Shown: positions 2,581 to 24,496, counted from the stretch's first letter. The stretch is DNA of 64,000 nt from Bugula neritina (GCA_964035545.1 CAXIUT010000291.1:1-64000); one strand, 5' to 3'. A program made the numbers and translations. Notes: generated by a model not told the origin, from the sequence alone.

Positions 2581-3132
2581 TTACCATGAGTAGCGTGTGC
2601 TGACCGGGGCGTGTTTGCAGTTGTTCAGGGGTTGGGTTTTGCTGTTGTCGCACCAGGCCCCTTTTAATTGGTGGCAAGTGTATCCGGTGGGCAGCTCATC
2701 GCCCGGCGTAAAGGTCTGGTTACCGAAAATGCACTCCAGTTTTAACTGAAGTTCAATAGATTCGTAATCAGTTTGACCCGTAGGAAGGTCACGGTCGAAC
2801 CAAGGTGTACTTCCACCTTGCCAGTGCCATCTGACTTTCATGTTGGCACAGCTGTTTTGGGGTTCGGCAAATCTGTTCTGGCACATGGCCCCGGTGCTCA
2901 GGCAGTGGTATGCCTTAGGTAAATTTAAGCCTGGATCATCTGACCTGTAAATGCCTTTATATTTACCTGAGGTGACTTCGCACTCGCCGACTAAATTGTG
3001 TTCGTGGCTCTCCCAGTCGCCGGAGCCACCCGGTAGATCACTATTTAATATGGGTGTTTCCCCAGCTATCAGGTTGGCAGTGATAAGCATTGCGATGGTG
3101 AGGAGTAAGGTTTTATGTTTAAAAGCCATCAT
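2581..3132 (-). CDS. Secreted Cys-rich protein with two mucin/CILP WxxW(CysD)-like repeats
   Basis: Signal peptide; TPILNSDLPGGSGDWE and TPWFDRDLPTGQTDYE motifs; paralog of 4180-4725. Confidence 0.7.
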   Translation of the reverse strand: MMAFKHKTLLLTIAMLITANLIAGETPILNSDLPGGSGDWESHEHNLVGECEVTSGKYKGIYRSDDPGLNLPKAYHCLSTGAMCQNRFAEPQNSCANMKVRWHWQGGSTPWFDRDLPTGQTDYESIELQLKLECIFGNQTFTPGDELPTGYTCHQLKGAWCDNSKTQPLNNCKHAPVSTRYSW

Positions 3133-4037
3133 TTGCTAATCTTTAACAGGTCTTGAGTCAGGCTATTTAACTGGTAGTTACCGGCTATTTGCCCGCTTGG
3201 CTCCCGAATGATCAACTGGTTGCCTGCCGGATCAAAACTCCAGCGACAGGTTTTGTGCTGATGGGCGTCGTTTGGTTCCAGGGAAAGAAACTGGCACTGG
3301 CTGTTCTCGTAAAAAGAGAGGGTTCTGCGGAAGTGAGCTGGTGGGAAAGTTTTGCTGCCTGCTTTGCGCCAGGCTAGCGTAGGTTCTTCATCTTCCTCAT
3401 GAGAATGTACCCAGGTTTGGTTGATGAATTTCAGGCTATCAGAGGTAGGGCGGCCTATGGTGCAGGGGATAAGGCTTACTGTATCAAGCTGTATGCCGAA
3501 GCCGCCGCTGGTATCGCGTAGCTGGCTGAATTCGATGGTTAGGTTGTGTGTATCAGGGCATAAAATATAACTGTATTCCTGCCAGTCTGCTGCGGTTGTG
3601 ATGATGGAATGGTTAGCTGTTCCGCATGTTGCTGCTGAGTGGTTTATTAGTTTTAGGTCAAATATATTGTGTTGTTCTCTATGGAATCTGGCCCAAAATT
3701 TGAGTAAATAATTTTTTCCGGGCTGAGTTTGTATAGTCTGTGCGAGTCTGTATCCTTCGGAAGAGGCGAGTTGCAGGATGTTGTTGCCGGAGTGTGGGTA
3801 GTTAGCAATTACCTGCCCCTTTGGGCCGCCGGAGACTTTCCAGCCCGGTATGTTGTAAGTTTTAGTGAAGCGAACGCCAAATGTATCAGAATTTAGTTTT
3901 ATGTCTTCGAAGCTGCCATTGGTGATTAGGTTTTGGGTGTTGATGGGGTTGCAGTTGTCTTGTGCGTTAGTGGCGTAGGTGTTCTGAGCGATGGTTAAGG
4001 TAGTAAAGAGTAGTAGGATGAGCCGAAATATGTTCAT
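3129..4037 (-). CDS. Secreted protein with CBM-like (DUF642/CBM4-9-type) jelly-roll domain
   Basis: Signal peptide; NLITNGSFE...IPGW...LAQTIQTQPGKNYLLKF...LDTVSL. Confidence 0.65.
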   Translation of the reverse strand: MNIFRLILLLFTTLTIAQNTYATNAQDNCNPINTQNLITNGSFEDIKLNSDTFGVRFTKTYNIPGWKVSGGPKGQVIANYPHSGNNILQLASSEGYRLAQTIQTQPGKNYLLKFWARFHREQHNIFDLKLINHSAATCGTANHSIITTAADWQEYSYILCPDTHNLTIEFSQLRDTSGGFGIQLDTVSLIPCTIGRPTSDSLKFINQTWVHSHEEDEEPTLAWRKAGSKTFPPAHFRRTLSFYENSQCQFLSLEPNDAHQHKTCRWSFDPAGNQLIIREPSGQIAGNYQLNSLTQDLLKISK

Positions 4038-4179
4038 AACACGATAAATTTAGTACTGTTTCCTGAATTAGTCTGTAAGAATGTTTGTCGATTGTGGTGC
4101 TGGAAGGCCACCTTCTGTGGTTGAAAGTGGCTTGATTGGTGAGTTGGACTGGAGGGTTAGCTCCATATCTACATCGCCG

Positions 4180-4725
4180 TTACCAAAAGTACCTGACCCT
4201 TACCGGTCGGTTTCGGCAGCTTCTTCTCGGTTGAGTCTGTTTGTTTACACACCAGGCTCCTCGCATTTTATTACAGGTATAGCCTGCTGGAATGTTATTG
4301 CTGGTAGGAGTGAATTTATTGCTGCTAACTCCCGGTGGGCCAAAATAGCACTCTGTTCTTAGCTGATGTTCAATGGTTTCATAATCGCCATTGCCGCTTG
4401 GGCGGTCACGATCAAACCATGGTGTTGCACCTCCCCGCCATGTCCATCTGACTTTCATATTTTTACAACCACCTCGGGTTCTGTTGTTATCGCACCAGCC
4501 TCCACGTGCTTTTTTGCAGGTGTATCCGGCGGGTAAGGATTGGCCTGGTCTATAAACAGTGCCTCCGATGTTGCACTCTACGTTTAAATAGCGCTCGTTG
4601 TTTTCCCAGTCGCCTGAGCCACCGGGCCTGTCTGAATTGAATATGGGGGTTTGGCCTGCTGTTGCAGTACTTGCAAAACCAATTAACAATGTGACTAATA
4701 ATAGCTTATTAAGATTTTTTAACAT
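4180..4725 (-). CDS. Secreted Cys-rich protein with two WxxW(CysD)-like repeats
   Basis: Signal peptide; FNSDRPGGSGDWE, WFDRDRPSGNGDYET, GAWCVNKQTQPRRSCRN..VRVRYFW; RBS AAGGAG. Confidence 0.75.
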   Translation of the reverse strand: MLKNLNKLLLVTLLIGFASTATAGQTPIFNSDRPGGSGDWENNERYLNVECNIGGTVYRPGQSLPAGYTCKKARGGWCDNNRTRGGCKNMKVRWTWRGGATPWFDRDRPSGNGDYETIEHQLRTECYFGPPGVSSNKFTPTSNNIPAGYTCNKMRGAWCVNKQTQPRRSCRNRPVRVRYFW

Positions 4726-4825
4726 TTTGATGCTCCTTGGGTGTGGAATTGTACATTAATAGATCTAATGATTTGAAAAGACTAGCCTATGAAAAGAGAG
4801 TTCTAGAAGTCGCTGGTATTTGCTA

Positions 4826-5509
4826 TTAATCCCAGCAGTTAGCAGGTTGGTTGTTGTTTTTCACCCAAAAGCGAGTTCTTTTATTACTATTATTTGGGTA
4901 GTTGTGTTTCAGCATTTTGCGTTTGTTATTATTATTCCATTGGTGAAACCTCGCATGGAAAGCCCAGCCACCTGACCTGGCGTTAGCATGGTTCCAGTTT
5001 CCACCAAAATGTTGATTAGCGCCCATGCCAGGCATCCATTTCCCCATATGATGTTCAGCCATGCGCCATCCATTGCCACAAATGTTATCAGCAGTGGCAG
5101 GGCTAGTTAAAGCTGTCCCTACGATTGGCGTAGTTAGTTTTATTTTTTGATCAACCCAACCCGAATAGAATTCTTTGGGCATGGCAGCACTCCCTGTGTT
5201 GACTACATAGCGTGGTCGGGGTTTGCTGTTACCTCCTACGCATAATATTGGTAAAGATTCGGTACAACTTGTTTCTCCTTGGTAGGCATTGCAAAAAGTT
5301 TTATTGCCTGTTGGTGATTTTGTCTCGCTGTTGCAACCTACATTAACTATTTTCTTTTGGTAGTTATTTGCAGGGCTGGAGAAGGTTTTGGCTCTGAAAC
5401 CCCAAGTCATACCATTACCACCCGCAGCCATTACCGGTGCACTAATAAATGCCAATGCCAAGCTGATCGCACAAAGATTGCGGCCTAAAATTATAGTCTT
5501 GCTTTTCAT
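4826..5509 (-). CDS. Secreted Cys/Trp-rich protein (GMTW...CxxYxGxTSC...GWRxAE...GGW...RFWV...NCW family)
   Basis: Start reassigned to ATG 5509 (GAGGT RBS); signal peptide; homologous to 13333-13902. Confidence 0.7.
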   Translation of the reverse strand: MKSKTIILGRNLCAISLALAFISAPVMAAGGNGMTWGFRAKTFSSPANNYQKKIVNVGCNSETKSPTGNKTFCNAYQGETSCTESLPILCVGGNSKPRPRYVVNTGSAAMPKEFYSGWVDQKIKLTTPIVGTALTSPATADNICGNGWRMAEHHMGKWMPGMGANQHFGGNWNHANARSGGWAFHARFHQWNNNNKRKMLKHNYPNNSNKRTRFWVKNNNQPANCWD

Positions 5510-5597
5510 GAGTAAATTACCTCGTGGTTGTTTGAAAATAAGGTTGTTTTTTTTGTTTTGTGTTACCATTTATATCAAAATAAACTTATGCGTTTAT

Positions 5598-5644
5598 GTA
5601 TTGATGCGACAATTTTTCAGGAAAATGCATCTAGATGACAAAAG
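5598..5644. promoter_or_regulatory. Conserved tandem direct-repeat motif, copy A
   Basis: GTATTGATGCGACAA and GCATCTAGATGACAA at a 29-bp period; same arrangement at 8878 and 14799. Confidence 0.55.
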
Positions 5645-5814
5645 CCTTTTTTAAATTTTTTCTGGGTATCAACAATTGATTTTTTTGGAGTTAATGGTGG
5701 GTTTTTAAAGGTCAGTAGGCAGAAGTTGAGTTTATAAAGATGGCTATCCGTAATAAAAAATAGGATCGAATATGTGTTGTCCATCCGATCCAAAAAAATA
5801 TTTGTGACTCAGCA

Positions 5815-6327
5815 TTATTGGTTTCGAACCAAGCGAACGTGGCGTTTTGCACTCTTTGTGTTAAAGTTATAGTAACCCGCTCCAAAATTCACAACCCAGG
5901 CAGCATGAGGCCAGTAAGCTGAGGTTGATGATGACCAATAATGGCCTGTGACAATATTGTTGGGAAATGCTGTTAAATTTAGCGAAGGGCCAATGCATTG
6001 GTGTTCAACGATAGAAGCCAGTTCTTTAATATTAGGCAGCCGCCAATTACCCCCGGCGCTGGCTGCTAAATCCAGCGCTTCCTTCCAGTTGTATATCGGC
6101 GGGGAAGCAGTACAGGTTAAAGTTGTGTCATTCCAACTTTGGCCTTCGGCGCACCGTTTCCAGATTAAACCGGTTTTGGTGTCTTTCACCGTACCATTAT
6201 TTTTACCAATCAGATGCCCTGTTGTCGCGGCGATAGTGTTGGTATTACAGGTCTGTGCATATGCATTAAACGATAACAACAGCAGGCTAACTGCCGTCAG
6301 TATGGTCAGTTTAAATTTGGTATTCAT
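5815..6327 (-). CDS. DUF1566 (Lcl C-terminal, C-type-lectin-like) secreted protein
   Basis: GTVKDTKTGLIWKRC, WRLPNIKEL, YWSSS, HVRLVR. Confidence 0.9.
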   Translation of the reverse strand: MNTKFKLTILTAVSLLLLSFNAYAQTCNTNTIAATTGHLIGKNNGTVKDTKTGLIWKRCAEGQSWNDTTLTCTASPPIYNWKEALDLAASAGGNWRLPNIKELASIVEHQCIGPSLNLTAFPNNIVTGHYWSSSTSAYWPHAAWVVNFGAGYYNFNTKSAKRHVRLVRNQ

Positions 6328-6347
6328 AATTGATCTCCACTGAAATG

Positions 6348-7493
6348 TTAATTGCCACGTACCAAACGGACCGGACGTGGGGTATTTTTGTTATTTGATG
6401 GCCCTGTGCCCGTGTTAAAGGTAACGCCCCATATCTGTACGGCATTGCCGATATAAGGTGATGAAGTCAGGTATAAAGTTGAAACCGTGTTGGGGAAATA
6501 TTTGACATCAATAGCCGGATTAAACCTATCGTAATGCACAATAGACTGGAGTTCTTTCTGGGTTGGTAAGCGCCAGTTATTTGCGCCACACAGACCATTA
6601 GCATTTACCGCCTGAACATAAGCAGCAGTGTCACAATGACTCCCAACACAGTTTCCACCGTTTTGTGTGCCGGGAGTGCCGCCATTGATTGCAGGGTTGG
6701 ATTCGTGCCATGTGTATGTCCACTTTCTATCATGCAAGCCGCCATCTTTGGTTTTAGTTTCCCAAATCAAACCAGTGACTTTGTCCTTTACACACGACCA
6801 TTTGGCTGCGTTTCTGGGTAATGCAGCGCCATCTGCTGAGACTTTTGTGAAGGCAAAACCTGCATGACCGTTGTTGTTGTTACCATTGCTTTTATCGCGA
6901 CCATGAGTTGCATCTTGTTTTGGAGGAATCGGGTCGCCTTGTGCATCATTTGCGTTGGAGGTGCAGGTTAGGTCGTTATTGTGGGCTAGGGTGGCGCTGC
7001 CATAGGCATAGTCGCCGCAGGTGATGATGCCTGTGTCATTGAGTTTATTGGTTGCAGCAGCTGGAACTTTGGCAACAACCTTGTACGTCTTATTTGCACT
7101 AAAGTTGCTTTTGTTGAGGTTGCTGTTTGAAGCGGGAAATGCCCTAACTTGCCATTTAATGGTATCGCCCAATGACAAGGGAAATGGAGATGGGCCTTGC
7201 CATGTGGTTGGATGTGAAGTGCAAGTGATGGCTCCGCTTGTAGTGCAAATAGAGCCTGATGACAATAAGGAGCTATTAAAAACGTTACTGCCTTTCTTGA
7301 CACGAATCTTGTAGCTAACAGCACCCTGCACAGCATTCCAAGTGAAAGCAGGCTGTGTCACAGTGCCATTACCTTGCGGTGATATGGTGTCTGGTTTATC
7401 AAGTCTGGCGCTATATGCAGTGTTAGTAGAAAGCAAAAAAACAAGCATTATTAATGGAGTTAATAATTTTGATGAAAAGTATGTAGTAGTCAT
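6348..7493 (-). CDS. Secreted FN3-like + DUF1566 protein
   Basis: LNDTGI..QDATHGRD..CVKDKVTGLIWE..WRLPTQKEL..PVRLVR; start probably MTTTY at 7493 (ORF track gives 7571). Confidence 0.85.
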   Translation of the reverse strand: MTTTYFSSKLLTPLIMLVFLLSTNTAYSARLDKPDTISPQGNGTVTQPAFTWNAVQGAVSYKIRVKKGSNVFNSSLLSSGSICTTSGAITCTSHPTTWQGPSPFPLSLGDTIKWQVRAFPASNSNLNKSNFSANKTYKVVAKVPAAATNKLNDTGIITCGDYAYGSATLAHNNDLTCTSNANDAQGDPIPPKQDATHGRDKSNGNNNNGHAGFAFTKVSADGAALPRNAAKWSCVKDKVTGLIWETKTKDGGLHDRKWTYTWHESNPAINGGTPGTQNGGNCVGSHCDTAAYVQAVNANGLCGANNWRLPTQKELQSIVHYDRFNPAIDVKYFPNTVSTLYLTSSPYIGNAVQIWGVTFNTGTGPSNNKNTPRPVRLVRGN

Positions 7494-7560
7494 TTTTCTA
7501 CCTTTATGATGGTTTTTTAATGAATTAATAAGCTTTGATTTTGTCTTTAGATTAGTGTAT

Positions 7561-7830
7561 CTAATATACAACAGGATCCCAAATGGAACGATATCCTATC
7601 CTTGGTCTTTTAATTCTTGATTTTGAGGTGGAGTTACCTGGGATTCTTTTGGGCTTGATGTGCGGATGTTCATGTTTTGAGTTAGTGGTTTCTTTTGTTT
7701 TTGATTTTTCAATGTCGTCAAGTTTAATATCTCCAAAGCCACCTTTCATCCCAGGAGGAGGCCCGGCAGTTAGCTGAATAGGGGTTGCGCTCATAATTAG
7801 AAGGCATATAAAAGCTATTTTAATATTCAT
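7561..7830 (-). CDS. Small secreted basic protein
   Basis: Signal-like N-terminus; GGAG RBS; co-oriented with neighbours. Confidence 0.5.
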   Translation of the reverse strand: MNIKIAFICLLIMSATPIQLTAGPPPGMKGGFGDIKLDDIEKSKTKETTNSKHEHPHIKPKRIPGNSTSKSRIKRPRIGYRSIWDPVVY

Positions 7831-7884
7831 AATATTCTCCGTTCGTGAATAGTTAATTTTTTTCCTACTGTGCTTTTTGAGGCT

Positions 7885-8715
7885 TTAACTGTCGTGCTGT
7901 AGTTGTCTTGGTGTTTGACTGGTTGGTGCAGGTCTAATTACTCTGCTTCTGTTTCTAGGGCCATCACGTACTATTCTTTGCAAGGCTTGTTTGACAGGTA
8001 CTGACTGTTGCCTGTGCATTGACGCATTTGGTTCATGTTTAGTTGCTCCCTCTTTAAGACAGCAGTATCGCCGATATAAATGTGCTACCCGGATGTCAGT
8101 ATCTTCGGCAATAACAAATGTGTATCTACCGTCTTGGACATTACTGGCGCTGATTGGACGCCACCACCATGTCCAGGTTGGGCCAACTGCTGGTGGATCT
8201 ATAGGCGCTGAAGTCATTGTTTGACCATTATTAAAATCCATAAAAATGTCATCAGTTGCGTTATCACCGTTTGGGCCATAGGGTGGGGGATTGCTATTAC
8301 GTAATTCAGCAGCTATTCTTGCATCTTGCAAAATGCAACATTTTCTTCTTGGAGGGCGAGATGTGTTAAAAGTATGCCCAAATATTTGGTTAACATAATG
8401 CTTATTATCATTTTGCGCGTTAAAATTTCTGATGCCAAGCGTTGATGGCGGGTTGCTAAATAAATTAGCAATGATAGGATCCATATCACTTAAGTCAGGG
8501 TTGGCTGGCCCGTATGTTGTCATTTTATCCCAGTGTTCATCAAAGTAGTGCCTGTCACACGGCGTCATGGGGGCTTTTCCACGAGCATTAGGAGGAGGCA
8601 TTAATTTCCTAATTTCGTTTGGATTTACTTCAGCTGCATAGGTTGGAAAAGCATTAAAATTAATACCTAAAATTGCGGCCATGAGTCCAGTTTTTAAATA
8701 GGTTTGCATAGTCAT
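7885..8715 (-). CDS. Secreted Cys-containing hypothetical protein
   Basis: Signal peptide; AAGGAG RBS; FGHTF...CC...EDTD...YCC. Confidence 0.7.
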   Translation of the reverse strand: MTMQTYLKTGLMAAILGINFNAFPTYAAEVNPNEIRKLMPPPNARGKAPMTPCDRHYFDEHWDKMTTYGPANPDLSDMDPIIANLFSNPPSTLGIRNFNAQNDNKHYVNQIFGHTFNTSRPPRRKCCILQDARIAAELRNSNPPPYGPNGDNATDDIFMDFNNGQTMTSAPIDPPAVGPTWTWWWRPISASNVQDGRYTFVIAEDTDIRVAHLYRRYCCLKEGATKHEPNASMHRQQSVPVKQALQRIVRDGPRNRSRVIRPAPTSQTPRQLQHDS

Positions 8716-8724
8716 TCTCCTTCA

Positions 8725-8772
8725 TTAATTCCAGCAGCTAGCATTGATTGTGTTATTTTTCACCCAATATGG
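8725..8772 (-). pseudogene. Relic 3' end of a third GMTW...NCW-family gene
   Basis: Reads PYWVKNNTINASCWN* versus RFWVKNNNQPANCWD* at 4826; preceded by an in-frame stop. Confidence 0.55.
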
Positions 8773-8877
8773 CTAATAGGTATAGCCTTTTGTGCGATAG
8801 GCTATTCGGAATAAACCAGGGGGTTCTTATCTCACATTTATACTATAAATTATATTGTATATTGGGTTAATTTGAAT

Positions 8878-8924
8878 GCATCAATACGACAATTTTCAGT
8901 GGATTTGCACCTATATGCCAAAAA
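8878..8924. promoter_or_regulatory. Conserved tandem direct-repeat motif, copy B
   Basis: GCATCAATACGACAA and GCACCTATATGCCAA at a 29-bp period. Confidence 0.55.
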
Positions 8925-9070
8925 TACTATTTTTATTTATGGATGAGTTTTTTAGGCTTTATGCGAAGTAAGCTTGAAATGTTGTCCGTGGTCTTGGTGA
9001 TTCAGTATCGAAAGCCTGCCGTGGATAATCAGATAGTTTTCTGGGTAAGTACAAAAAAAGTAAGCCAGTA

Positions 9071-10226
9071 AGTACCGATGTAGAAGTTTTCAGAGATTAG
9101 TGGTGGTATAATGATCGGCACTATTTTACCGACATTCTGACCCCAACTAATGAAATTTGTCTCTCGTCTCAGTGCAGAAGTTAAGCTGACTTTGAGTGAA
9201 GCACAGCAGCATCACCCATCCTCCCGCACGCGTCAACGTGCTCATGCCATACAGCTCAGTAACAAAAGTTATACACTGTCACAATTAGCGGATGTGTTTA
9301 GTGTACGTAGCCATACCATCAGCCAGTGGATTGATGCCTGGGAAGCCTCGGGAGTGGTTGGCTTGTTTGACCTGCCGAGGAGTGGGCGACCGGCGACTTT
9401 AACCGCTGATGAAGTCGAGCGTTTTCGGCATTATCTTGATAAGAATCCGCATCAGCCCAAGAGCGCTATCGCTCTGTTGGAAGCAGAGACGAATAAGACT
9501 GCCAGTGATGACACCTACAAACGCTGTTTGAAAAAAATTTTACCGTTGGAAACGACTACGGACTTCCAGCAAGGAGCAACGTGACGAAGAGACCTTCCGT
9601 AAAGACCAACAGGTGATGATCTATCTACAAGAGAAGGAAGACGCGGGTGAGATTTGCTTGCGCTACTTTGATGAAGCTGGCTTTAGCCTCACCCCCAGCG
9701 TCCCTTATGGATGGCAAAAGGTGGGAGAAACTTGTCGTATCCCGTCTCAAAAGAGCAAACGTCAGAATGTACTCGGATTTATGGGCCGTCAGGGTGAGTG
9801 GTTTTATCAGGTTAAAGAAGGCTCAGTGACCACAGAGACTGTGATTGAAGCTTTCGATGCATTCTCGCAGAAATACTACGAAGAGGAGTTTTTGAAAACG
9901 GGCAAGCTGTGTTTTGTGGCCATTGATAATGCATCCATGCATACCAGTGCTGCCTTCAGGGCACGAATGGAAGACTGGCTCTTGCGTGGTGTCATACCAC
10001 GTTACCTTCCGACCTATTCACCGGAATTGAATTTAATCGAAATTTTGTGGCGGAAGATAAAGTACGAATGGCTACCTTTGCAGGCATTCAGAGACACTAT
10101 CCACTTCAAATATTGGTTGAACAAAATTCTTGAATCGATAGGTGATGAATATCAAATTAATTTTGCTCAAACGGCAAAGTGAGCATTATACGGCCACGAA
10201 ATTGCGAAAACTTTTGCGGAGGTACT
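9071..10226 (+). mobile_element. IS630-family element, type 1, copy 1 (1156 bp)
   Basis: orfA 9150-9584 (HTH) and orfB to 10182 (DDE, YSPELNLIE) joined at an A7 run; ends AGTACC/GGTACT; TA duplication. Confidence 0.95.
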
Positions 10227-10246
10227 TAACTCTGATTATCTACTAG

Positions 10247-11978
10247 GTGGCCGTCCGAGAACGGATCCTCTAACCACCCCACTTTTAGTCAGATCACTTT
10301 TTTAGCAGCACCATCCATCCTGCGACCAGGAGGCCGCTTATTTTCGCCCAAATAGCGATCAATTAACTGCTATTGCAGGCATTTCCGGCCCTTTTAGCCT
10401 CATTATCTGGCTTGTGCCACCCAATTTCCAGATTCCGGACGCACTAATCCTGTCACCGCCGCTTTCACCATTTTTTTCAGGTTGTGTGCCGCGCAGACCA
10501 GCGAAAATTCACCCGCCACTTTTTCTGCACCCCGCAGACTAAACGCCCGGAATCCACCGTTCTTAATATGACCAAACACTGGCTCAACAATCACCTTGCG
10601 TTGTTTGTAAATCGCTTTGGCTTCGCCAGTTGCCATCTGTTCACGCATTTGCTGACGTATCACTTCCTGTCCATCAGAATTGATGGTGCGGGCTTCACCG
10701 GTCTTTGAGCGGCAACAACGTTGATGATACGGGCAGCTCTGGCAGGTGGCTGCTTCACCCTGATAAACCCGCTTACCGTCCTTACCCTGTGTTTTCAAGG
10801 GGAGAATCTGGTCAGCAGGGCAGCGAAAGCTATCACTGGCTTCATCGTAAATAAAATCAGCTTTGACCAGCTTGCGATCAGAATTTGCCAGTGCATCCGC
10901 TACGCTCTGTTCACCCCGGTCAACCGCGACATAAGCCTCAACCTCTGCTGCTTCCAGCGCTTCAAGGTTATCGCCCGAATAATAGCCGTTGTCCAGACTC
11001 ATCTTCTCAGGCAACTCGCCACTTGTATCTTTCAGGGCTGCCAGTGCCGGTTCAACTTCCTGCTTGTCGTTGGCATTTTGGCTGACATGCTGCCCAACAA
11101 TAATTTGCTGCTTACTGTCCACGCTAATCTGACCATTGTAGCAATAATCAAAATCACCCTTCTTACCCATGATACGGGCATCTTCATCCGCAAAGCTGAT
11201 CTGCTTTTTATCGTCAATCACCTTGCCCGGATGTAGCGCTTCTTCCCGTTTTTCCAGAGCGGCTTTTGCCGCTTTGATCGTCGCCAGCCGCTGCTGTTTA
11301 AAGGCCAGTTCTTTAGGCAGTTCATCACCCCGGTCAGTGCCATGCGCCGCGTCTTCTTCCTGATCACAGGCTGTGCCCTGTTTGATCAGCTCATCAATCG
11401 CAGCGGTTAACGCTGCCTCTTTCGCTTTCAGGTGTTTATAACTCATCGCTTTATGCTTTGAGCTGTTCGCTTTGAATTTGGAACCATCCAGACTAACATG
11501 ACCCAGTGAAGCCAGCTTCATCTCCAGGGCCAGCTTCACTGTCTGCTTAAAACAGGCGTGAAAAAACTCAGCATTATCCTTGCGAAAGTCGCTGAGCACC
11601 CGGAAGTTCGGGCAGTTCCGGCCTGCAATGTACATAAACGATAAATCTTCGTTGCACCGTTTTTCCAACTGACGCGAACTGAACACGCCGTGGCTATAGC
11701 CATAAATCAGAATGCTGGTGATTTGGCGGGGATGGTAAGCATGTTGGCCCTTCGGGCTGTATTTCGCTTCAATGCTACTGGTATCCAGTTGCTGAAAAAG
11801 ATCATGGAAAAGAAAGCAGTCGTGATCGGAGGGCAGCAAGTCAAAAACATTGCCCGGAAATAAGGCACGCTGGTGGAGGTCTGCCGGTTCAGATTTAAAG
11901 GGGATAGACATCTATGTTGAGGTCGTCAGTCAGACAAAATTTGATTTTAGCAAAAGTTGGGTGTTGTCGGACAGCCAC
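10247..11978 (-). mobile_element. IS1182-family element (transposase 10403-11911)
   Basis: SSRQLE, LDGSKFKANSS, RKVIVEPVFGHIK motifs; IRs GTGGCCGTCCGA/TCGGACAGCCAC; flanking CTAG duplication. Confidence 0.9.
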
Positions 11979-11981
11979 CTA

Positions 11982-13309
11982 GTACCTCACCTTGAAACTA
12001 TCATGGATAACCCCCATCTCTCTATCATCTGAGAGTTATGGTAGCTAATTCGATGTCCCGTCCTGTTTCTGTAGTTGAACTGAGTTCTGGCCAGCAAGCA
12101 CTGCTGGAAAGTTTTGTGAAGAGTGGAAAAACGGCTTACAGTTTATTCCAACGTAGTCAGGTCGTTTTGTTGGCGGCTTTGGGAAACAGCAATAAAGCGA
12201 TCAGCCAACAAGTTAGCTTGAATGAAAATGCTGTGGGGCTGTGGCGTCGTCGCTGGGTTGAAGGCCATTCAAAACTGTCGCGTTGGGAAGATAAACCCCG
12301 GTTGCTGGGTCAGGGTATTCGTCACCTACTCAGTGACCTTCCCCGCAGTGGCAGCCCACCCACTTTTACTGCTGAGCAGGTTTGTCGGATTATCGCCCTG
12401 GCTTGCGAGAAACCGCCGACTCACCTAAGCCACTGGACACAGGCCGAATTGGCCCGGATGGCGGTAGAACGCGGCATTGTTAATAGCATCTCGAAAAGCA
12501 GTATCGAGCGTTTTTTAAAATCAGGCTGATTTAAAGCCCCACCGTATTCAGTACTGGCTTAATCAGGGTGTTGAAGATAGCCCCGAATTTCGCCAGGCTG
12601 TTCATGCTATCTGTAAACTGTACCATCAGGCTGAAGCCCTCCATGAACAAGGAATACACCTGGTGAGTACGGATGAGAAAACGGGTATGCAAGCGATTGA
12701 ACGTATCCATCCTGACCACCTGATGGAGTCCGGGCAACCGGAACGGCACGAGTTTGAATATACCCGGCATGGCACTCAATGCCTGATCGCTAATTTCGAA
12801 ATTGCGACCGGGCAAGTGATCGACTCAACCGTTGGTGATACCCGAACTGAAACTGATTTTGTCGCCCACATTAAGCGTACGGTTGGTACTGCGGCTAAGG
12901 ATCAGTGGATATTTGTAGTGGATCAGCTCAATACACACAAGTCAGCCGGATTGGTCGAGTACGTCGCGCAAGCCTGTCAGTTAAACCAGCCGCTGGGGGA
13001 AAAGGGGAAATCAGGTATTCTGAAAAGTATGGCATCAAGAATGGCCTTCCTGCAAGATGAAGCGCATCGCATTCGATTCGTATTCACGCCGAAGCATTGC
13101 TCCTGGCTCAATCAAGTGGAAATTTGGTTTGGCATTCTCAGTCGACGCTTACTCAGGCGAGGCAGCTTTACCTCACAGGAAAATCTTAAGCAAAGAGTGG
13201 AAGCCTTTATCGATTATTTCAACAAATACTTGGCTAAGCCTTTTCAATGGACTTACATCGGGAAGCCGCTGGTGGCATGATTATCAATCATATCTCCAAG
13301 GCGAGGTAC
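11982..13309 (+). mobile_element. IS630-family element, type 2, copy 1 (1328 bp)
   Basis: orfA 12038-12529 and orfB to 13280 (SWLNQVEIWF) joined near TTTTTTAAAATCAG; IR GTACCTC(A/G)CCTTG; inserted at CTAG. Confidence 0.95.
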
Positions 13310-13332
13310 TAGTTGTGGGGGGGGGGGTAAAT

Positions 13333-14487
13333 TCACTTAAGAGACTTGTTAGGACTCCAACAATTAGCACCCTGATTCTTGATATGAACCCAAAACCGCT
13401 CAGTTTTCAGCTTATCAAGCATTTCATCATCACCATCAAACCGAGCATTAAAATTCCACCCCCCACTACTATTAGCATCAGCCAAATTCCAAGGCGGCTC
13501 TGAATCAGCATGATAATTTTCCACACCCATCCCCTCAATCCAATGCCCATCATGAAACTCAGCAATCCGCCAGCCATTCCCACAAGCGCCATTAGCAGCC
13601 TCAAGACTCGTCAGCTGCTCCCCTCTGGTTCTAGGACTAAGCTTGATCGCCCTGGGCGACCAGCCCGCAGAACTTTCTTTACCCAGCTTCACAGAATATG
13701 CGGGTCGGGGAATATCCCCCGTTTCTTCCACACACAAAATATGACGCTCAGCAGCACAACTAGTCTCTCCTTTATAAGGGTCACACATACCGCCTTGCCC
13801 CGTTGCCCATTCCGTCACGCTATTGCAGCCAACCTGTACCAAATTAGCCGGGCCATCGGGAATAGTTTGAGCGCGAAAACCCCAGGTCATACCTTTTCTC
13901 ACCGGTGCGGGCGGTGGCGCAGAGCAACTAAAGCTTAAGTTAACTTTTTATCCAGTGATCTTTAGACCATTTAGCATAACGCTTGCCGTTCTCCCGAAGA
14001 GTGTCGCCACCAAAAACAACCGTGATTTTATCGTCTGAGAATGTGGACTTGGCATTAAGCCAGCTTGCTTCGGGGTTATTGGACTGGATGTACATTCCCG
14101 CTACTTTAGTTGTGCAGTTGCCATCGGTAGCTGTGGATTTATACCGTCAAAGTGTAAGGCCGCATCTACCCCGTAACCCGGTTGTTCGTCATCAAAACCA
14201 TGGTCGAAATCAATGCGTATTGTTGATTGTCCTACATCGATATTGAAGCGATGCGGTGTTGGGTTAGATGTCATCTGATCGTTGACCTGGGGCAGCTCTA
14301 TCGTATTGTTAACCGTGATCTGCCTCTTGGCGTTTGGAAGCATATAAACATCCATTTGATCGCCATGAAGTGATGCATTAGCACAGTTACAGGCAGACGC
14401 ACCAGGACTGGAAAGCAGGAATATTCCGGCTAAAATAGACTTTCTGCTAAAGCATATCCTGATGACTGGCACGGAGGTCTCCTGCAT
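13333..14487 (-). pseudogene. Secreted two-domain protein with C-terminal GMTW...NCW domain; two compensating frameshifts (~14127, ~13945)
   Basis: ORFs 14101-14487 and 13333-13902 share a frame; the intervening DGNCTTKVAGMY...KDHWIK reads openly in a shifted frame. Confidence 0.65.
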
Positions 14488-14798
14488 TAATCGGGGCGAA
14501 GATGAAAATAATGTCTACTATTAAATGGGGTGAATCCTGACTGCTTGATATGTGAGCTTAGTAGTAAAATGATTGGATTTAAATGTGAATTTTTCACAAA
14601 AGATATGTGAGGCGTACACTTTTTTTGTGACGATAATTCACTGATAATAAATGAGGTTAGCATAGCCAGCATGCCCCATTTAAGATGAATAATATTGATT
14701 AATGTTATGAGTAACCACTCGGTATGAGTGGAAAACCATGCTGTTAACTTAAAGCACATAAGCTATTTTTACTAAAATAAAACTATCTATGAATGCAT

Positions 14799-14845
14799 GC
14801 ATTAATACGCCAATCCTCATGAAAGTTGCACTTACATGCCAAAAA
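14799..14845. promoter_or_regulatory. Conserved tandem direct-repeat motif, copy C (overlaps the sensor kinase start codon)
   Basis: GCATTAATACGCCAA and GCACTTACATGCCAA at a 29-bp period. Confidence 0.55.
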
Positions 14846-17800
14846 TACTGTTTTTCTTACTGATCGCTTTTTTTTCAGAGACTTTATATGCAGCAGATCT
14901 GCGCTTTTCCCATTTGGGTATAAGTACCTCCGCAAAAGTTTTCGCAATTTCGTGGCCGTATAATGCTCACTTTGCCGTTTGAGCAAAATTAATTTGATAT
15001 TCATCACCTATCGATTCAAGAATTTTGTTCAACCAATATTTGAAGTGGATAGTGTCTCTGAATGCCTGCAAAGGTAGCCATTCGTACTTTATCTTCCGCC
15101 ACAAAATTTCGATTAAATTCAATTCCGGTGAATAGGTCGGAAGGTAACGTGGTATGACACCACGCAAGAGCCAGTCTTCCATTCGTGCCCTGAAGGCAGC
15201 ACTGGTATGCATGGATGCATTATCAATGGCCACAAAACACAGCTTGCCCGTTTTCAAAAACTCCTCTTCGTAGTATTTCTGCGAGAATGCATCGAAAGCT
15301 TCAATCACAGTCTCTGTGGTCACTGAGCCTTCTTTAACCTGATAAAACCACTCACCCTGACGGCCCATAAATCCGAGTACATTCTGACGTTTGCTCTTTT
15401 GAGACGGGATACGACAAGTTTCTCCCACCTTTTGCCATCCATAAGGGACGCTGGGGGTGAGGCTAAAGCCAGCTTCATCAAAGTAGCGCAAGCAAATCTC
15501 ACCCGCGTCTTCCTTCTCTTGTAGATAGATCATCACCTGTTGGTCTTTACGGAAGGTCTCTTCGTCACGTTGCTCCTTGCTGGAAGTCCGTAGTCGTTTC
15601 CAACGGTAAAATTTTTTTCAAACAGCGTTTGTAGGTGTCATCACTGGCAGTCTTATTCGTCTCTGCTTCCAACAGAGCGATAGCGCTCTTGGGCTGATGC
15701 GGATTCTTATCAAGATAATGCCGAAAACGCTCGACTTCATCAGCGGTTAAAGTCGCCGGTCGCCCACTCCTCGGCAGGTCAAACAAGCCAACCACTCCCG
15801 AGGCTTCCCAGGCATCAATCCACTGGCTGATGGTATGGCTACGTACACTAAACACATCCGCTAATTGTGACAGTGTATAACTTTTGTTACTGAGCTGTAT
15901 GGCATGAGCACGTTGACGCGTGCGGGAGGATGGGTGATGCTGCTGTGCTTCACTCAAAGTCAGCTTAACTTCTGCACTGAGACGAGAGACAAATTTCATT
16001 AGTTGGGGTCAGAATGTCGGTAAAATAGTGCCGATCATTATACCACCACTAATCTCTGAAAACTTCTACATCGGTACTTACAGCAGGGCGGTATCGATGC
16101 GCTAGCTCAGGACAAGCATGGCTTTCTCTGGATAGGTACAAGAAATGGATTGGTGCGCTACGATGGTAATGCCATAAAAACCTACCGTAATATTCCTGAT
16201 AAACCTGAAACCCTGCAAGATGATGCCATCATCGCCCTGCACTATGGTAAAGACGGGCGATTATGGGTCGGCACAGCGGAAAATGGAGCGAGTTACTATA
16301 ACTACACAACGGGGCAATTCACCCGAATTGACACCAAGGCGGCTGGTAAGCATGTCTACCGTTTCTACGATGATGAATCGGGGGAGGGTATTTATGCGCA
16401 AACGACAGCTGGTCTGTTTTTTATCGACCTGAGCAATAACGCCAAACTTGTTCTGAGTGCAGAATATTCAGAGTTAGTATTGGGCCTGTATGTCAGTGCA
16501 TCCGGTACGCACGCTATTCTCGAAACAGGGCAAAAGCTCACCTTAGGCCAGAACCCTGAACGACCAGAAATATACCAAATTATCCCGAAAACGCTGATGC
16601 AATACTGGCAGGCTACGTTCTGCCCACACCTGATTAGAGAGGCAATACAGGTAGGCGGTGGTTCTGGCCTGTTCTATTGTTTGCAGGGCAACAAGGTCAT
16701 CGACACCAAATTGAATGAGGTCTTATTTCAGGCCGGTATTAATCCCGGCCAGCTGGTGGTCTATGACCTGACGGAAGATGATAACGGTGTCATCTGGATA
16801 AATAGTGGTCGGGGGTTGCTGCGGATTACGGGCGATCTGGTCTCTAAGATTAAAAGCCCCGGTTTTGATGGCCAGAGCCTGTCCGGCAATAAGCTATCAG
16901 TTCTGCTGGCCGGGCAGAAGAATACCTTGTTTGTTGGCACGCAGGAGCGGGGGCTAAGTACACTCACGCTGGATGACTCGGGTATCAGTTATTTCAACAC
17001 TCTCTATACGGCGTCTCCGGCTGAAAATAAAATTGTCCCTATTGCGCCCGCGAAACCTTGTCAGACTGACGATGACAATGGACAAGCCATGACCTGGAGT
17101 ACGCTGAAAGACGCGGATGGTGATCTATGGGTAGGGAATAACGCAGGTTTGACCCGCAGGCCAGTCGGTTCAGCTACTTTTCAACACTACCACCAGCTGG
17201 GTAGTAAAGCGTTAGTCGATGTATGTGCAGTGCGGGCGTTGGCAGAGGCGGATGGCAAAATCTGGGTCGGTACACCGACAGGGTTGCTCGCCTATGATAA
17301 GCGTAGCCAGGCTGTTACCCACTATACATCTCAGCGGGGTGATGAGGGCGAGCATCATAAAGCGCTTACTGCGATGCGATCAGTGTTCTGTTGCATGATA
17401 ATAAGCGTGGCAGCTTGTGGGTAGGTACTGAGCAGTCTGGGCTGAACCGGATTGATTTGAACAGCGGTAAAATGCGTCATTTTTCTTCTATGGCTAACAA
17501 CCCGGCCATGCTGTCACATGCACAGGTACATAGCCTGTATCTGGATCGGAATAACCGCCTGTGGGTAGGGACGGGGGCAGGTCTGTCGTTATGGAGTGAG
17601 GATAGTGATTCCTTTAAAACCATTCGGGCTTCTGATGAACCCGCAACATTGAGTGGTGCTGTGGTTCATACGATCTACCAGTCCGATGAGGATACCTTAT
17701 GGGCCGGTACGAATAACGGCTTGAATCGGATTAAGATTAGTCAGTTCACTGTGGAAAAACGCTGGTTTGAACGTGATGGGTTACCACATCCGGCAATCTA

Positions 17801-19163
17801 TCAATTTGTCGCTGATGATTATGGTCACTATTGGCTGAGTACGGCTAATGGTTTAAGCCGCTTTGATCCGGCACAGGATAGTTTCAGCAATTATTACCCG
17901 CAGCATGAAACTCAGGCTGATACGGTTAATGTCAATGCCTGGTACCAGGAGAAACAGGGTTTGCTCTACCTGAGTGGGACAGATGGATTTAGTGTTATCA
18001 ATCCGCAAGCATTTGCTACGACTGAGAAATCATATCCTCCGCTTATTACCCGGGTTGATAGCTTAGATCGGCAGGGTGACGAGTCAAAGCTGGAGACGCA
18101 CCCTGCGTTAACTCAGGTGCTGCCCTTAACCGGGGAAGAAGTGCCGACCAAGTTGACGCGTAATGTCCGCCTCAACTTTACCTACCCGTTTTTTGGTGAT
18201 AGCGATTTAGTAAAAAGCCAGTATCGTCTGTTGCCTGCTGTTGATGTTTGGTCAAAGACTTCTCCCGGTTCGCATTATGTGGACTACACCGGCCTGAAAC
18301 CAGGCGCTTATGAATTTCAGCTCAAAGCGAATCTGGCTGGCAATCAGATCAGCAGCTTCCGCTTTGAGATTGAACCTTATTTTTGGGAAACGCCCTGGTT
18401 TCGGGCGCTGGCGTTGATCGCACTGTTAATATCAACCGTATTGTTCACGATTTACTGCTACCGGGTTTGGGGCAAGTTTTCCGCCGACAAAATGACACGT
18501 CAGCATTACCGCATTGTTGAACACGAACTGCGCCCGCATCTGCATGAGGCGAATAAGCAGTTGCAATCGATGCTGCAATCGCCTGGTTTGGCGATTAAAG
18601 ACAAGCAAACCATTCGCTTTTCCATTATGCCGTTAATTGGCAAATCCATTGACTTTATTGCAGAACTACGGACGTTGGTGGATTTACGCCGTACCGTGAA
18701 ACAACCGAAGCAGCTTTATATGCTGGAAGATGTACTGGACGAAGTGCTGCTGTTTTTCCGGGATCAACAGCAGCGTATTGTGTTGGGTGAGGTGGAAGAT
18801 ATTAATGTTCTGACACATCAGGACGCAGTGTATTTACTGGTGAAAAACCTCATCTCTAATGCGATTAAGTATTCGCCGGGCGGTGAGTCGGTACAGGTAA
18901 ATGTGTACTCTGAGGGCAAGACGCTGGTCGTCGAGTGTAATGATCAGGGTATCGGTATTAGTAAAGATAAGCGCAAGGTTATTTATGAGCCGTATAAGCG
19001 CTTTGCCGGGGAGTATAAAAATATTAATGGTCAGGGTATCGGTTTAGCGATTGTACGCTTTGTTGTTCATACTTATCAGGGCAGTATCACTATCACAGAC
19101 AATCAGCCACAGGGGAGTTGTTTCATTGTCCGTCTAAAGGGAGTAGTCGTAGATGAATCATAA
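14836..19163 (+). pseudogene. Beta-propeller/Y_Y_Y periplasmic sensor histidine kinase (HTCS-like), interrupted by IS630 and frameshifted near 17370
   Basis: Removing the IS restores MPKILFFLLIAFFSETLYAADLRFSHLGIQQGGIDALAQDKHGFLWIGT; repeated LWVGT blades, YTGLKPGAYEF, TM, HELR, NAIKYS, DQGIGI, GQGIGL. Confidence 0.85.
14923..16078 (-). mobile_element. IS630-family element, type 1, copy 2
   Basis: Same proteins and same length as 9071-10226, inverted; TA duplication at 14921 and 16079. Confidence 0.95.
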
Positions 19164-19938
19164 AACCAACGGAACTGTCGTATTGATTGAAGACGAGCCA
19201 GCTTCAATTCAGCGTTTGTTGCCCCTGTTGCGTAAGTACCATGAATGCTATTTTGCTACTAATGGCGAGGGCGGGATAAATCTGTATCGTAAGGTCATGG
19301 CTAAGAACCCGCTGGTGATTTGCGATGTGAATCTGCCGGATATGCTGGGGTTTGATGTTTGCCGGGCGATTAAGGCCCACAATCCGGCGACTTATGTCAT
19401 GTTATTGACCGCTTATAATGACAGTGAGCTGAGAATGGCGGGGCTGAACGCTTATGCGGATAGTTATGTCGATAAGGTGCTGAGCGATGAGGAGATTCGG
19501 CTCAAAGTCCGGAATGCCTTTAATACGGTACAGCTCAATCATGCGGTAGAACCGCCGGTTATAACAGAGAAGTCTTCGTGCCGGTGCAAACTGGAAAATT
19601 TTGAAACTTTGGTGCGGGATCGTTTGCTGGATTATTATAAACAGCCGTTTTTTGAGCGTGATAAGCACGGGTGTAATCTGGAAATCATGGCGGAATTTGT
19701 GCATCAGTCTCCACGTACCTTTCAGCGCAAGATGCATGCACAGGTCGGTATGCCATTTAAGACCTTTCAATTAAAAGTTCGCTTGCAAAGAAGCCGGGAA
19801 TTATTGGTGGATGAATTCAGCGTGACCCAGATTGCGGATATTCTGGAATTTTCCAGTCCATCGCACTTTTCACGTGCCTTTCGCGATGAGTATGGGATGA
19901 CGCCGGGTAAGTATAAAAAGCACCAGTTGACGGTGTAA
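19153..19938 (+). CDS. Response regulator, REC + AraC-type HTH
   Basis: IEDE...CDVNLPDMLG...LLTA...K; C-terminal SVTQIADILEFSSPSHFSRAFRDEYGMTPGKY; overlaps kinase stop. Confidence 0.9.
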   Translation: MNHKTNGTVVLIEDEPASIQRLLPLLRKYHECYFATNGEGGINLYRKVMAKNPLVICDVNLPDMLGFDVCRAIKAHNPATYVMLLTAYNDSELRMAGLNAYADSYVDKVLSDEEIRLKVRNAFNTVQLNHAVEPPVITEKSSCRCKLENFETLVRDRLLDYYKQPFFERDKHGCNLEIMAEFVHQSPRTFQRKMHAQVGMPFKTFQLKVRLQRSRELLVDEFSVTQIADILEFSSPSHFSRAFRDEYGMTPGKYKKHQLTV

Positions 19939-23120: not shown

Positions 23121-23168
23121 GCCTGTGTTGTATAATGCCCTGTGCCAGCGGTGAGCGCTTGCTCACTA

Positions 23169-24496
23169 GTACCTCGCCTTGGAGATATGATTGATAATCA
23201 TGCCACCAGCGGCTTCCCGATGTAAGTCCATTGAAAAGGCTTAGCCAAGTATTTGTTGAAATAATCGATAAAGGCTTCCACTCTTTGCTTAAGATTTTCC
23301 TGTGAGGTAAAGCTGCCTCGCCTGAGTAAGCGTCGACTGAGAATGCCAAACCAAATTTCCACTTGATTGAGCCAGGAGCAATGCTTCGGCGTGAATACGA
23401 ATCGAATGCGATGCGCTTCATCTTGCAGGAAGGCCATTCTTGATGCCATACTTTTCAGAATACCTGATTTCCCCTTTTCCCCCAGCGGCTGGTTTAACTG
23501 ACAGGCTTGCGCGACGTACTCGACCAATCCGGCTGACTTGTGTGTATTGAGCTGATCCACTACAAATATCCACTGATCCTTAGCCGCAGTACCAACCGTA
23601 CGCTTAATGTGGGCGACAAAATCAGTTTCAGTTCGGGTATCACCAACGGTTGAGTCGATCACTTGCCCGGTCGCAATTTCGAAATTAGCGATCAGGCATT
23701 GAGTGCCATGCCGGGTATATTCAAACTCGTGCCGTTCCGGTTGCCCGGACTCCATCAGGTGGTCAGGATGGATACGTTCAATCGCTTGCATACCCGTTTT
23801 CTCATCCGTACTCACCAGGTGTATTCCTTGTTCATGGAGGGCTTCAGCCTGATGGTACAGTTTACAGATAGCATGAACAGCCTGGCGAAATTCGGGGCTA
23901 TCTTCAACACCCTGATTAAGCCAGTACTGAATACGGTGGGGCTTTAAATCAGCCTGATTTTAAAAAACGCTCGATACTGCTTTTCGAGATGCTATTAACA
24001 ATGCCGCGTTCTACCGCCATCCGGGCCAATTCGGCCTGTGTCCAGTGGCTTAGGTGAGTCGGCGGTTTCTCGCAAGCCAGGGCGATAATCCGACAAACCT
24101 GCTCAGCAGTAAAAGTGGGTGGGCTGCCACTGCGGGGAAGGTCACTGAGTAGGTGACGAATACCCTGACCCAGCAACCGGGGTTTATCTTCCCAACGCGA
24201 CAGTTTTGAATGGCCTTCAACCCAGCGACGACGCCACAGCCCCACAGCATTTTCATTCAAGCTAACTTGTTGGCTGATCGCTTTATTGCTGTTTCCCAAA
24301 GCCGCCAACAAAACGACCTGACTACGTTGGAATAAACTGTAAGCCGTTTTTCCACTCTTCACAAAACTTTCCAGCAGTGCTTGCTGGCCAGAACTCAGTT
24401 CAACTACAGAAACAGGACGGGACATCGAATTAGCTACCATAACTCTCAGATGATAGAGAGATGGGGGTTATCCATGATAGTTTCAAGGTGAGGTAC
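23169..24496 (-). mobile_element. IS630-family element, type 2, copy 2
   Basis: Same proteins and same 1328-bp length as 11982-13309; inserted at CTAG. Confidence 0.95.

Follow-up and report, generated by a model that had tools for sequence, protein, structure and literature searches.

A candidate regulon of exported binding-type proteins with a shared direct-repeat operator beside a two-gene propeller-sensor kinase and REC-AraC regulator

We analysed a 64,000-nucleotide stretch of DNA from Bugula neritina (GCA_964035545.1, CAXIUT010000291.1:1-64000), which we refer to as the window, and concentrated on the region from 2581 to 19938. This region carries a candidate regulon, in which nine genes for exported proteins, all on the minus strand between 2581 and 14487, are divergent from a sensor histidine kinase gene and a response regulator gene on the plus strand. 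A first-pass annotation of the DNA had described this arrangement, and the open reading frames (ORFs) and domains were found as it had placed them. Eight minus-strand ORFs stand head to tail from 2581 to 8715, and four insertion sequence (IS) copies break up the gene cluster. A signal-like hydrophobic N-terminus is present in every minus-strand ORF of the cluster except the fragment at 13333-13902, and each of the eight ORFs at 2581-8715 opens with a basic stretch followed by a hydrophobic stretch and an AxA-type end. The products had also been called Cys-rich, a description that suits the WxxW pair (4.4% Cys) and overstates the moderate content of the remaining proteins (1-3%).

Table. Features of the locus, with coordinates counted from the first nucleotide of the window.
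Feature	Position	Strand	Evidence or remark
183-aa secreted protein with two WxxW-like repeats	2581-3132	-	Mucin2_WxxW 19.7 bits, under Pfam cut-off; signal peptide; 8 Cys
302-aa secreted DUF642/CBM4_9-like protein	3129-4037	-	DUF642 37.5 bits (cut-off 27), residues 36-181; CBM_4_9
181-aa secreted Mucin2_WxxW protein	4180-4725	-	43.2 bits (cut-off 22.4)
247-aa secreted GMTW..NCW protein	4826-5569	-	no Pfam or NCBIfam match; likely true start ATG 5509
Predicted operator P1	5596-5642	-	two 18-bp direct-repeat half-sites 29 bp apart; -10-like TATAAA 21 nt downstream
170-aa secreted Lcl_C (DUF1566) protein	5815-6327	-	112 bits (cut-off 34.9)
407-aa secreted protein, Lcl_C (DUF1566) at C-terminus	6348-7571	-	104.6 bits (cut-off 34.9)
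89-aa candidate ORF, signal peptide and basic tail, uncertain as a real gene	7561-7830	-	no Pfam match
276-aa secreted protein of a very rare family	7885-8715	-	no Pfam match; CBM-like jelly-roll core in model
Predicted operator P2	8876-8922	-	followed by TTCAAA-16-TATAAT at 8876..8849, the region's best sigma-70-like promoter
IS630-family element A, copy 1	9068-10228	+	HTH_32 and DDE_3
IS1182/IS5-like element, approximate ends	10229-11976	-	transposase 10403-11911; DDE_Tnp_1_6, DUF772, DDE_Tnp_1
IS630-family element B	11977-13313	+	inverted identical copy at 23165-24501
~370-aa lipoprotein-like gene, N-terminal domain and GMTW..NCW domain	13333-14487	-	frame changes twice; tblastn with orthologues
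Predicted operator P3	14797-14843	-	distal half-site holds kinase start codon on opposite strand
Kinase gene, 5' fragment, signal peptide, ~29 codons	14836-14920	+	MPKILFFLLIAFFSETLYAADLRFSHLGI 66% identical to L001 kinase residues 1-29
IS630-family element A, copy 2, within kinase gene	14921-16081	-	100% identical to 9068-10228, inverted
Rest of Reg_prop/Y_Y_Y sensor histidine kinase gene	16082-19163	+	frame change near 17371; Pfam, tblastn
REC and AraC-type (HTH_18) response regulator, intact	19153-19938	+	start overlaps kinase stop by 11 nt

Pfam searches with the two kinase reading frames, 16150-17424 and 17391-19163, return Reg_prop repeats (56 bits for each piece), a weak Y_Y_Y domain (17.6 bits, E 0.0035) and HATPase_c. 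Among related loci, which are designated here by L numbers, the intact orthologue in L003 reaches 112.8 bits for Reg_prop, and Y_Y_Y is present in the more distant kinase of L092. The intact orthologous kinases are 1027-1056 aa long and are composed of a signal peptide, a Reg_prop double propeller, Y_Y_Y, one transmembrane helix, an H-box EHELRP and an ATPase domain, which is the periplasmic two-propeller and Y_Y_Y sensor that characterizes hybrid two-component systems (HTCS). The regulator scores 60.1 bits for Response_reg and 75.5 bits for HTH_18, both over the Pfam cut-offs, and the acidic pocket DE, the phospho-acceptor Asp in ICDVNLPD, the Thr and the Lys of its receiver are all visible. 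The pair has the layout of a classical two-component system, in which a regulator with a receiver (REC) domain and an AraC-type helix-turn-helix (HTH) domain lies beside its kinase. It is not a single-polypeptide kinase-REC-AraC fusion, since the reading frame of the kinase runs to 19163 and that of the regulator, a different one, opens at 19153, and the same two-gene layout is found in L001, L003, L007, L095 and L097. The first-pass annotation was thus correct that the system is split into two genes, and it missed that the kinase gene is itself broken by an IS at about codon 29.

We found 11 orthologues of the regulator at 65-82% identity and more distant ones besides. Outside the orthologous group, the closest relatives of the kinase are Reg_prop kinases at 23-27% identity, mostly from Bacteroidota and many of them fused hybrids, which bears out the earlier description of the system as HTCS-like. 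The GTDB species representatives contain one kinase orthologue, that of the metagenome-assembled genome (MAG) of L001, and all other matches are no more than 27% identical, the search patterns being ones that would not have picked up the kinase of the window itself. Of those distant kinases, 27/79 are fused hybrids and 1 has a separate REC-AraC gene directly downstream, as judged by a rough BLAST test. Non-hybrid Reg_prop kinases are common.

Three of the genes divergent from the kinase share an upstream sequence element. The pattern TTTTGGCATnTArGTGCAA has 3 matches in the window against 0.22 expected, and each match is followed 29 bp on by ATTGkCGyATyrATrCAT. These predicted operators, P1, P2 and P3, lie upstream of the 247-aa, 276-aa and ~370-aa genes, respectively, and all are on the minus strand. 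The consensus consists of two 18-bp sites with a 29-bp period, TTTGGCrTrTArrTGCAa and ATTGTCGyrTnrATGCAT, which are separated by 11 bp. A weight matrix built on the three window sites alone was then applied to the other loci, where it found sites in the kinase/GMTW intergenic region of L097 (43.4 bits), in the kinase/Tectonin intergenic region of L003 (42.6 bits), upstream of a 300-aa gene in L001 (36.9 bits), upstream of a 192-aa gene in L007 (31.1 bits), at the kinase start of L095 (30.6 bits) and between the kinase and a 368-aa gene in L001 (24.7 bits). The next-best scores in those loci are no higher than 12.7 bits, and the best score is 19.9 bits in 1.44 Mb of unrelated Reg_prop-kinase loci and 13.2 bits in the rest of the window. 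Altogether, ten sites in six lineages have a common layout, and the information content is 1.12 and 1.44 bits per position in the half-sites versus 0.49-0.87 in the flanks and spacer. An operator-pattern scan of Joint Genome Institute (JGI) metagenome contigs recovered nothing beyond the dolphin-oral contig that was known before.

In most sites, a -10-like TAtAAw hexamer lies 21 nt past the proximal half-site (+22..+27), and in a consensus scan of P2 the promoter begins at the last base of the proximal half-site. Two direct repeats with the proximal one abutting the -35 constitute the layout that is typical of AraC/XylS-type activators. Read on the opposite strand, the distal half-site includes the start codon of the kinase as the CAT of TTTGGCAT, at 14836-14843 in the window, 6883-6892 in L001 and 2579-2588 in L003. 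A regulator bound at this place would cover the beginning of its own operon, so the position of the start codon suggests that the kinase-regulator operon may be autoregulated. At L100 1-362, ahead of the nearest stand-alone homologue of the 276-aa protein (P0033, 49% identity), there is no operator of the window type, and the region holds instead a different direct repeat, GGCATTT..TTCATAGTAAAAnCAATAAT, which occurs twice, about 77 nt apart.

Wherever contigs are long enough, the kinase-regulator pair is divergent from exported-protein genes, and in four other lineages it adjoins homologues of the window genes, with the GMTW..NCW, 276-aa, WxxW and DUF642 families in common. The fullest counterpart is L001, a dolphin-oral MAG labelled Thiothrix nivea. 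Outward from its kinase are genes for a 368-aa protein, the orthologue of the ~370-aa gene product that is broken in the window, and a 300-aa protein (35% identical to the window 276-aa protein by BLASTP). Two small ORFs come next, then genes for a 184-aa WxxW protein (49% to 4180-4725), a 303-aa DUF642 protein (65% to 3129-4037) and a 183-aa WxxW-like protein, which occupies the same position as 2581-3132, is 68% identical to it and is 46% identical to 4180-4725, and so provides an indirect link between these two window proteins. The order in L001 is that of the window minus the ISs, both DUF1566 genes and the 247-aa gene, and the earlier view that the genes form one compact locus once the ISs are removed is upheld by this collinearity. 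L003 carries a Tectonin protein, a 302-aa DUF642/CBM protein (46% to 3129-4037) and a WxxW fragment; L006/L007 carry 370-aa and 192-aa GMTW proteins; and L097 carries a 218-aa GMTW protein that is 44% identical to the window 247-aa protein. The 247-aa protein is itself 40-45% identical to the C-terminal domain of the kinase-adjacent genes in L001, L007 and L097. By BLAST, the 89-aa ORF at 7561-7830 does not match the small ORFs that occupy the corresponding position in L001.

Had homologous pairs never co-occurred with these families, the regulon that the first-pass annotation proposed would have been difficult to sustain. This is not what we found, as homologous pairs, with regulators 65-82% identical, do adjoin the same families in other lineages. 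A common operator links the units. Not all of the set that had been proposed is conserved, however: the GMTW, 276-aa, WxxW and DUF642 families recur beside the pair, and the DUF1566 genes at 5815-6327 and 6348-7571 have no homologue in L001, L003 or L005-8. The two DUF1566 genes are a lineage-specific addition that lies outside the conserved set. No Pfam family of a SusC/SusD pair or of glycan-degrading enzymes occurs among the neighbours in the window, L001, L003 or L005-8, and the claim that no carbohydrate-active enzymes or transporters lie beside the pair holds in the window, L001, L003 and L007.

The conserved first gene divergent from the kinase encodes a predicted GMTW lipoprotein, and no other neighbour recurs in nearly all lineages. 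In the window, this one ~370-aa gene is represented by two ORFs, of which 14101-14487 is the N-terminal part and 13333-13902 the C-terminal part. When the 370-aa protein of L007 or its 368-aa counterpart of L001 is used as a tblastn query, one alignment results, from 14466 to 13357 at 46-50% identity, and it takes in residues 3-368 of the L007 protein. The middle 50 residues are readable only in another frame, and in-frame stops lie at 14101 and ~13951. By the lipobox rule, judged by eye, the product is predicted to be a lipoprotein because the N-termini of its orthologues end in VSAC or LVAC.

To assess the frame changes we used assembled contigs of the DNA run X1 only, where the depth in the flanks is 2-5.5x. 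An X1 contig is short by one letter at 13945, within the A-run at the second frame change of the ~370-aa gene, and X1 contig ends fall at 14125 and 17371, which are the two remaining places where the frame changes. The three frame changes, two in the ~370-aa gene and one in the kinase, may therefore be low-coverage assembly errors.

The IS insertion in the kinase gene is, in contrast to the frame changes, solid. The IS630-A copies at 9068-10228 and 14921-16081 are 100% identical and inverted, and the second of these splits the kinase gene after about codon 29, with the remainder resuming at 16082. In a tblastn search, residues 26-460 of the L001 kinase align in frame 1 and residues 456-1042 in frame 3. 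A contig of X1 spans the left IS630-A/kinase junction, and no IS-free joint was found among the X1 contigs. Word depth in X1 is ~58 for IS630-A against 2-5.5 for the flanks, with several different loose ends at both borders; therefore, the genome must contain many copies of IS630-A. We considered an inversion between the two IS630-A copies as the cause of the missing 5' end of the kinase gene and rejected it. The segment in question sits immediately to the left of copy 2, which makes this a simple insertion, and the genes follow the same order as in L001. The two IS630-B copies (11977-13313 and 23165-24501), also inverted and 100% identical, flank the 370-aa gene, the kinase, the regulator, an ATP-binding cassette (ABC) exporter and a GDPD gene. 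Were these two copies to recombine, a 9.9-kb block could be inverted; the present order is collinear with L001.

As a result of the insertion, the signal-peptide segment and the operon's upstream region are parted from the remaining kinase-regulator operon, and the signal-peptide segment and the full kinase reading frame do not form one intact gene in the window, owing to IS630-A and the frame change at ~17371. The sensor kinase is dead in this genome. Since the kinase is cut by an IS, the system cannot be ligand-induced as it stands, and the earlier proposal of a ligand-induced module fails for this genome. The regulator probably depends on the same promoter, because its start overlaps the kinase end. 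With an IS between the operon and its promoter and with the kinase split, the system here is probably blind to its signal and is possibly silent. The loss is recent, given that the IS copies are 100% identical and that the eight target genes and the regulator are intact.

We next consider what the exported products look like. The GMTW..NCW domain is exported, spans ~150-200 residues and has conserved Cys and Trp in its family alignment. Its structure model has a predicted local distance difference test score (pLDDT) of 78 and a predicted template modelling score (pTM) of 0.81, and a shape search of the Atlas finds only unannotated clusters at template modelling (TM) scores of 0.64-0.70. VIA-align gave no match at all with Z>=2 for this domain, which is unusual, and we do not claim a new fold. 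The idea that it is a diverged DUF1566/Lcl_C or C-type-lectin-like domain is unsupported, with an hhalign probability of 0.2% and no match in the PDB. An Atlas feature search with the 247-aa protein leads to unnamed clusters only, and the same search with the 276-aa protein returns nothing, as does a word search. In a profile search of 1.84 billion proteins, the 276-aa family has 10 representatives at E <= 0.001. Residues 60-220 of the 276-aa model (pLDDT 72) resemble CBM35, CBM6, CBM8, CBM4 and the BcsB carbohydrate-binding domain, at Foldseek 7e-5 and Z 7-8, the latter a range that the tool calls common and that may mirror a common arrangement.

The Lcl_C domain exceeds the gathering score in both DUF1566 proteins, and the founding member of this domain family binds sulphated glycosaminoglycans (PMC11162425). 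The other recognised families of the cargo are DUF642/CBM4_9 and, in L003, Tectonin. No NCBIfam family reaches its cut-off, and Pfam and NCBIfam detect no catalytic, transporter or secretion-system domains among the cargo of the window and the related loci. Taken together, the cargo looks like a set of glycan-binding-type proteins, as predicted from folds and families. Given that the products are exported and lack catalytic and transport domains, they are probably a signal-induced set of surface or extracellular binding proteins.

Several further features lie close to the locus or elsewhere in the window. A gene for a DsbA-like thioredoxin (828-1340; Thioredoxin_4 96 bits, DSBA 71.5 bits) is located 1.2 kb from the cluster of exported, Cys-containing proteins; L001 has no DsbA-like gene at the equivalent place and has Rrf2/IscS there instead. 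Two adjacent genes for DUF2007 proteins, which are putatively signal-transducing, lie just outside the left end of the cluster (1363-1782 and 2054-2479). At 55126-63918 on the minus strand, a 2930-aa ORF consists of seven to eight tandem 1032-nt (344-aa) repeats with a mutual identity of 88-98%.

We propose that the locus is a locus-specific regulon, in which a classical two-component system with an HTCS-type sensor and a REC-AraC regulator controls genes for exported binding proteins through direct-repeat operators, and we put the probability of this reading at roughly 0.6. The regulator, translated from the overlapping reading frame, would be the partner of the kinase. Once phosphorylated, it would bind as a dimer to the direct repeat of two 18-bp sites, the proximal one of which would abut the -35 of a weak sigma-70 promoter with a TAtAAw -10 21 nt on, and the bound regulator would activate transcription from two or three promoters adjacent to its own gene. 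In the window, three such promoters would head the units 14487->13333, 8715->5815 and 5569->2581. The gene anatomy, the synteny, the conserved operator and the IS insertion on which this proposal builds are observed; from these we infer which protein binds the operator, that it activates rather than represses, what kind of ligand is sensed and what the cargo does, including the surface, matrix or host-interaction role proposed earlier. Overall, the interpretation given by the first-pass annotation is partly supported. More tentatively, and with greater doubt than belief, we can see the locus as a lineage-restricted module of epibiotic, Thiotrichales-like gammaproteobacteria, in which a split Bacteroides-type glycan sensor induces a changeable secreted lectin-like set and not catabolic enzymes.

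A number of observations weigh against the regulon that we propose. Six lineages in total are known, and the public runs that hold the stretch comprise one DNA run (X1) and no RNA run. Where the regulator is only 36-44% identical (L092 and L093), the kinase is similar, the neighbours are different and no clear operator is seen: the pair in L092 (2-2257; regulator 36% identical) is divergent from IPTL-CTERM and cadherin-like/Big_9 surface proteins and is followed by a TonB-dependent receptor, and the neighbours in L093 are glutamine-synthetase-like genes. GMTW proteins at 33-37% identity stand alone in unrelated contexts. It is conserved adjacency that links the operator to this particular regulator, and 29 bp does not amount to an integral number of turns of the helix, the usual period of AraC-type repeats being 21 bp. 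Turning to the cargo, neither Foldseek nor VIA-align nor a sequence profile matches the GMTW..NCW domain to any PDB entry, and the commonness of the Z values for the 276-aa model also counts here. Finally, none of the WxxW and DUF642 genes is preceded by its own operator. They can belong to the regulon only if transcription from P1 runs on through gaps of 100 and 142 nt, and there is a promoter-like site ahead of 4725.

This last point also bears on the narrower reading that the pair controls itself and the GMTW lipoprotein gene only, and that the remaining secreted genes are unrelated passengers in a variable islet of the genome. That no neighbour but the GMTW gene recurs in nearly all lineages agrees with such an islet, and so does the way in which the cargo varies by lineage, DUF1566 being confined to the window and Tectonin to L003. 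The operator, however, is also found ahead of the unrelated gene for the 276-aa protein (300 aa in L001), both in the window and in L001, as well as ahead of the window's 247-aa gene and the 192-aa gene of L007. The WxxW-DUF642-WxxW block has the same position and order in L001 as in the window, and partly so in L003; we therefore judge control of the GMTW gene alone to be unlikely. We regard as very improbable the suggestion that the motif is not the operator of the neighbouring regulator at all and is instead a sigma-54 promoter (TGGCAT-N5-TGCA) or a site for a global factor. The distal half-site TTGGCATnTAnGTGCA does resemble a -24/-12 element, but the sigma-54 reading fails because the GG and GC are 9 nt apart in TTGGCATATAGGTGCA and TTGGCATGTAAGTGCA, not the required 10, and because the GG is not conserved, being lost in P1 and in all proximal half-sites (TTGTCG). 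The motif is, moreover, a direct repeat with a sigma-70-like -10 at a constant distance behind it, and the locus contains no gene for a sigma-54 activator. As for a global factor, no further copy scores above 13.2 bits in the 64-kb window, the only part of the genome that was scanned.

The possibility that the whole locus is, in this genome, a decaying remnant without current function deserves more weight, although we lean against it. It is compatible with the proposed regulon and concerns the present state only. The IS in the kinase gene, the frame changes in the kinase and the ~370-aa gene, the three IS types inside the cluster and the abundance of IS630-A in the genome all point towards decay. 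Yet the eight secreted-protein genes and the regulator retain intact reading frames, the identity of the IS copies marks the insertions as recent, and at least one of the frame changes disagrees with an independent contig, the other two being at contig ends with 2-5x depth.

To our knowledge, nearly all that is understood about propeller/Y_Y_Y sensors concerns their role as switches of polysaccharide-degrading loci in Bacteroidota. Here the same type of sensor occurs in a two-gene form in another phylum, where gene order and an operator tie it to an exported set that is free of enzymes and transporters. Non-hybrid Reg_prop kinases and direct-repeat operators for AraC outputs are already known, and we found no description of a system of this kind in searches of the literature on HTCS, propeller/Y_Y_Y sensors or Lcl/DUF1566. 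What is new is the combination, namely a two-gene HTCS-like system in a rare gammaproteobacterial lineage, an operator with a 29-bp period, and an exported binding-type cargo that includes two nearly unknown families. The locus offers a concrete and testable case of what else such sensors control, the DNA site being defined, the regulator small and the kinases of its relatives intact; it gives two barely known secreted protein families a regulatory context, and in this genome it presents a recent knockout of a sensor by an insertion sequence. If the more tentative reading, that of a lineage-restricted module, is correct, the HTCS sensor architecture would have been recruited for attachment or matrix building instead of feeding, the operator described here would make the entire regulon recognisable from sequence, and the regulated set would include a GMTW..NCW domain without a detectable counterpart among solved structures and a family of about ten known representatives.

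The system can be compared with several that are known. Activator-dependent promoters of the AraC/XylS family (XylS at Pm, RhaS, MarA-type) have a proximal direct-repeat site that touches the -35, and combine a poor -35 with a good -10. The promoters described here likewise contain a pair of direct-repeat sites, in each of which two conserved blocks are spaced by about one turn of the helix, and differ from these in the 29-bp period and in a regulator that would be activated through its receiver and not through a ligand-binding domain, the sites themselves being predictions. In the YesM/YesN systems of Firmicutes, the sensor lacks propellers and the system controls polysaccharide-utilisation enzymes and transporters. 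Our system is also encoded by two genes and its regulator also joins REC to an AraC-type HTH domain; unlike YesM/YesN, it has a sensor with propellers and its neighbours include no utilisation enzymes or transporters. Two window proteins resemble the Legionella collagen-like adhesin Lcl in having an Lcl_C domain that exceeds the Pfam cut-off, whereas they are short, have no collagen-like repeats and are encoded by genes that are absent from the related loci.

The closest comparison is with the HTCS of Bacteroides, such as BT4663 and BT3172. The two have in common a Reg_prop double propeller with Y_Y_Y, a histidine kinase core, REC and an AraC output, as well as predicted direct-repeat operators and control, predicted in our case, of adjacent genes. 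For the HTCS regulators of Bacteroides, the predicted binding sites are direct repeats whose two copies are set apart by a spacer, with a period that averages 21 bp (PMC3878776). In contrast, the period here is 29 bp, the sensor and regulator are encoded by two overlapping genes and not by one polypeptide, the host is a gammaproteobacterium-like lineage whose kinase is 23-27% identical to HTCS kinases, and the neighbours are exported binding-type proteins, with no SusC/SusD, glycoside hydrolase or lyase among them.

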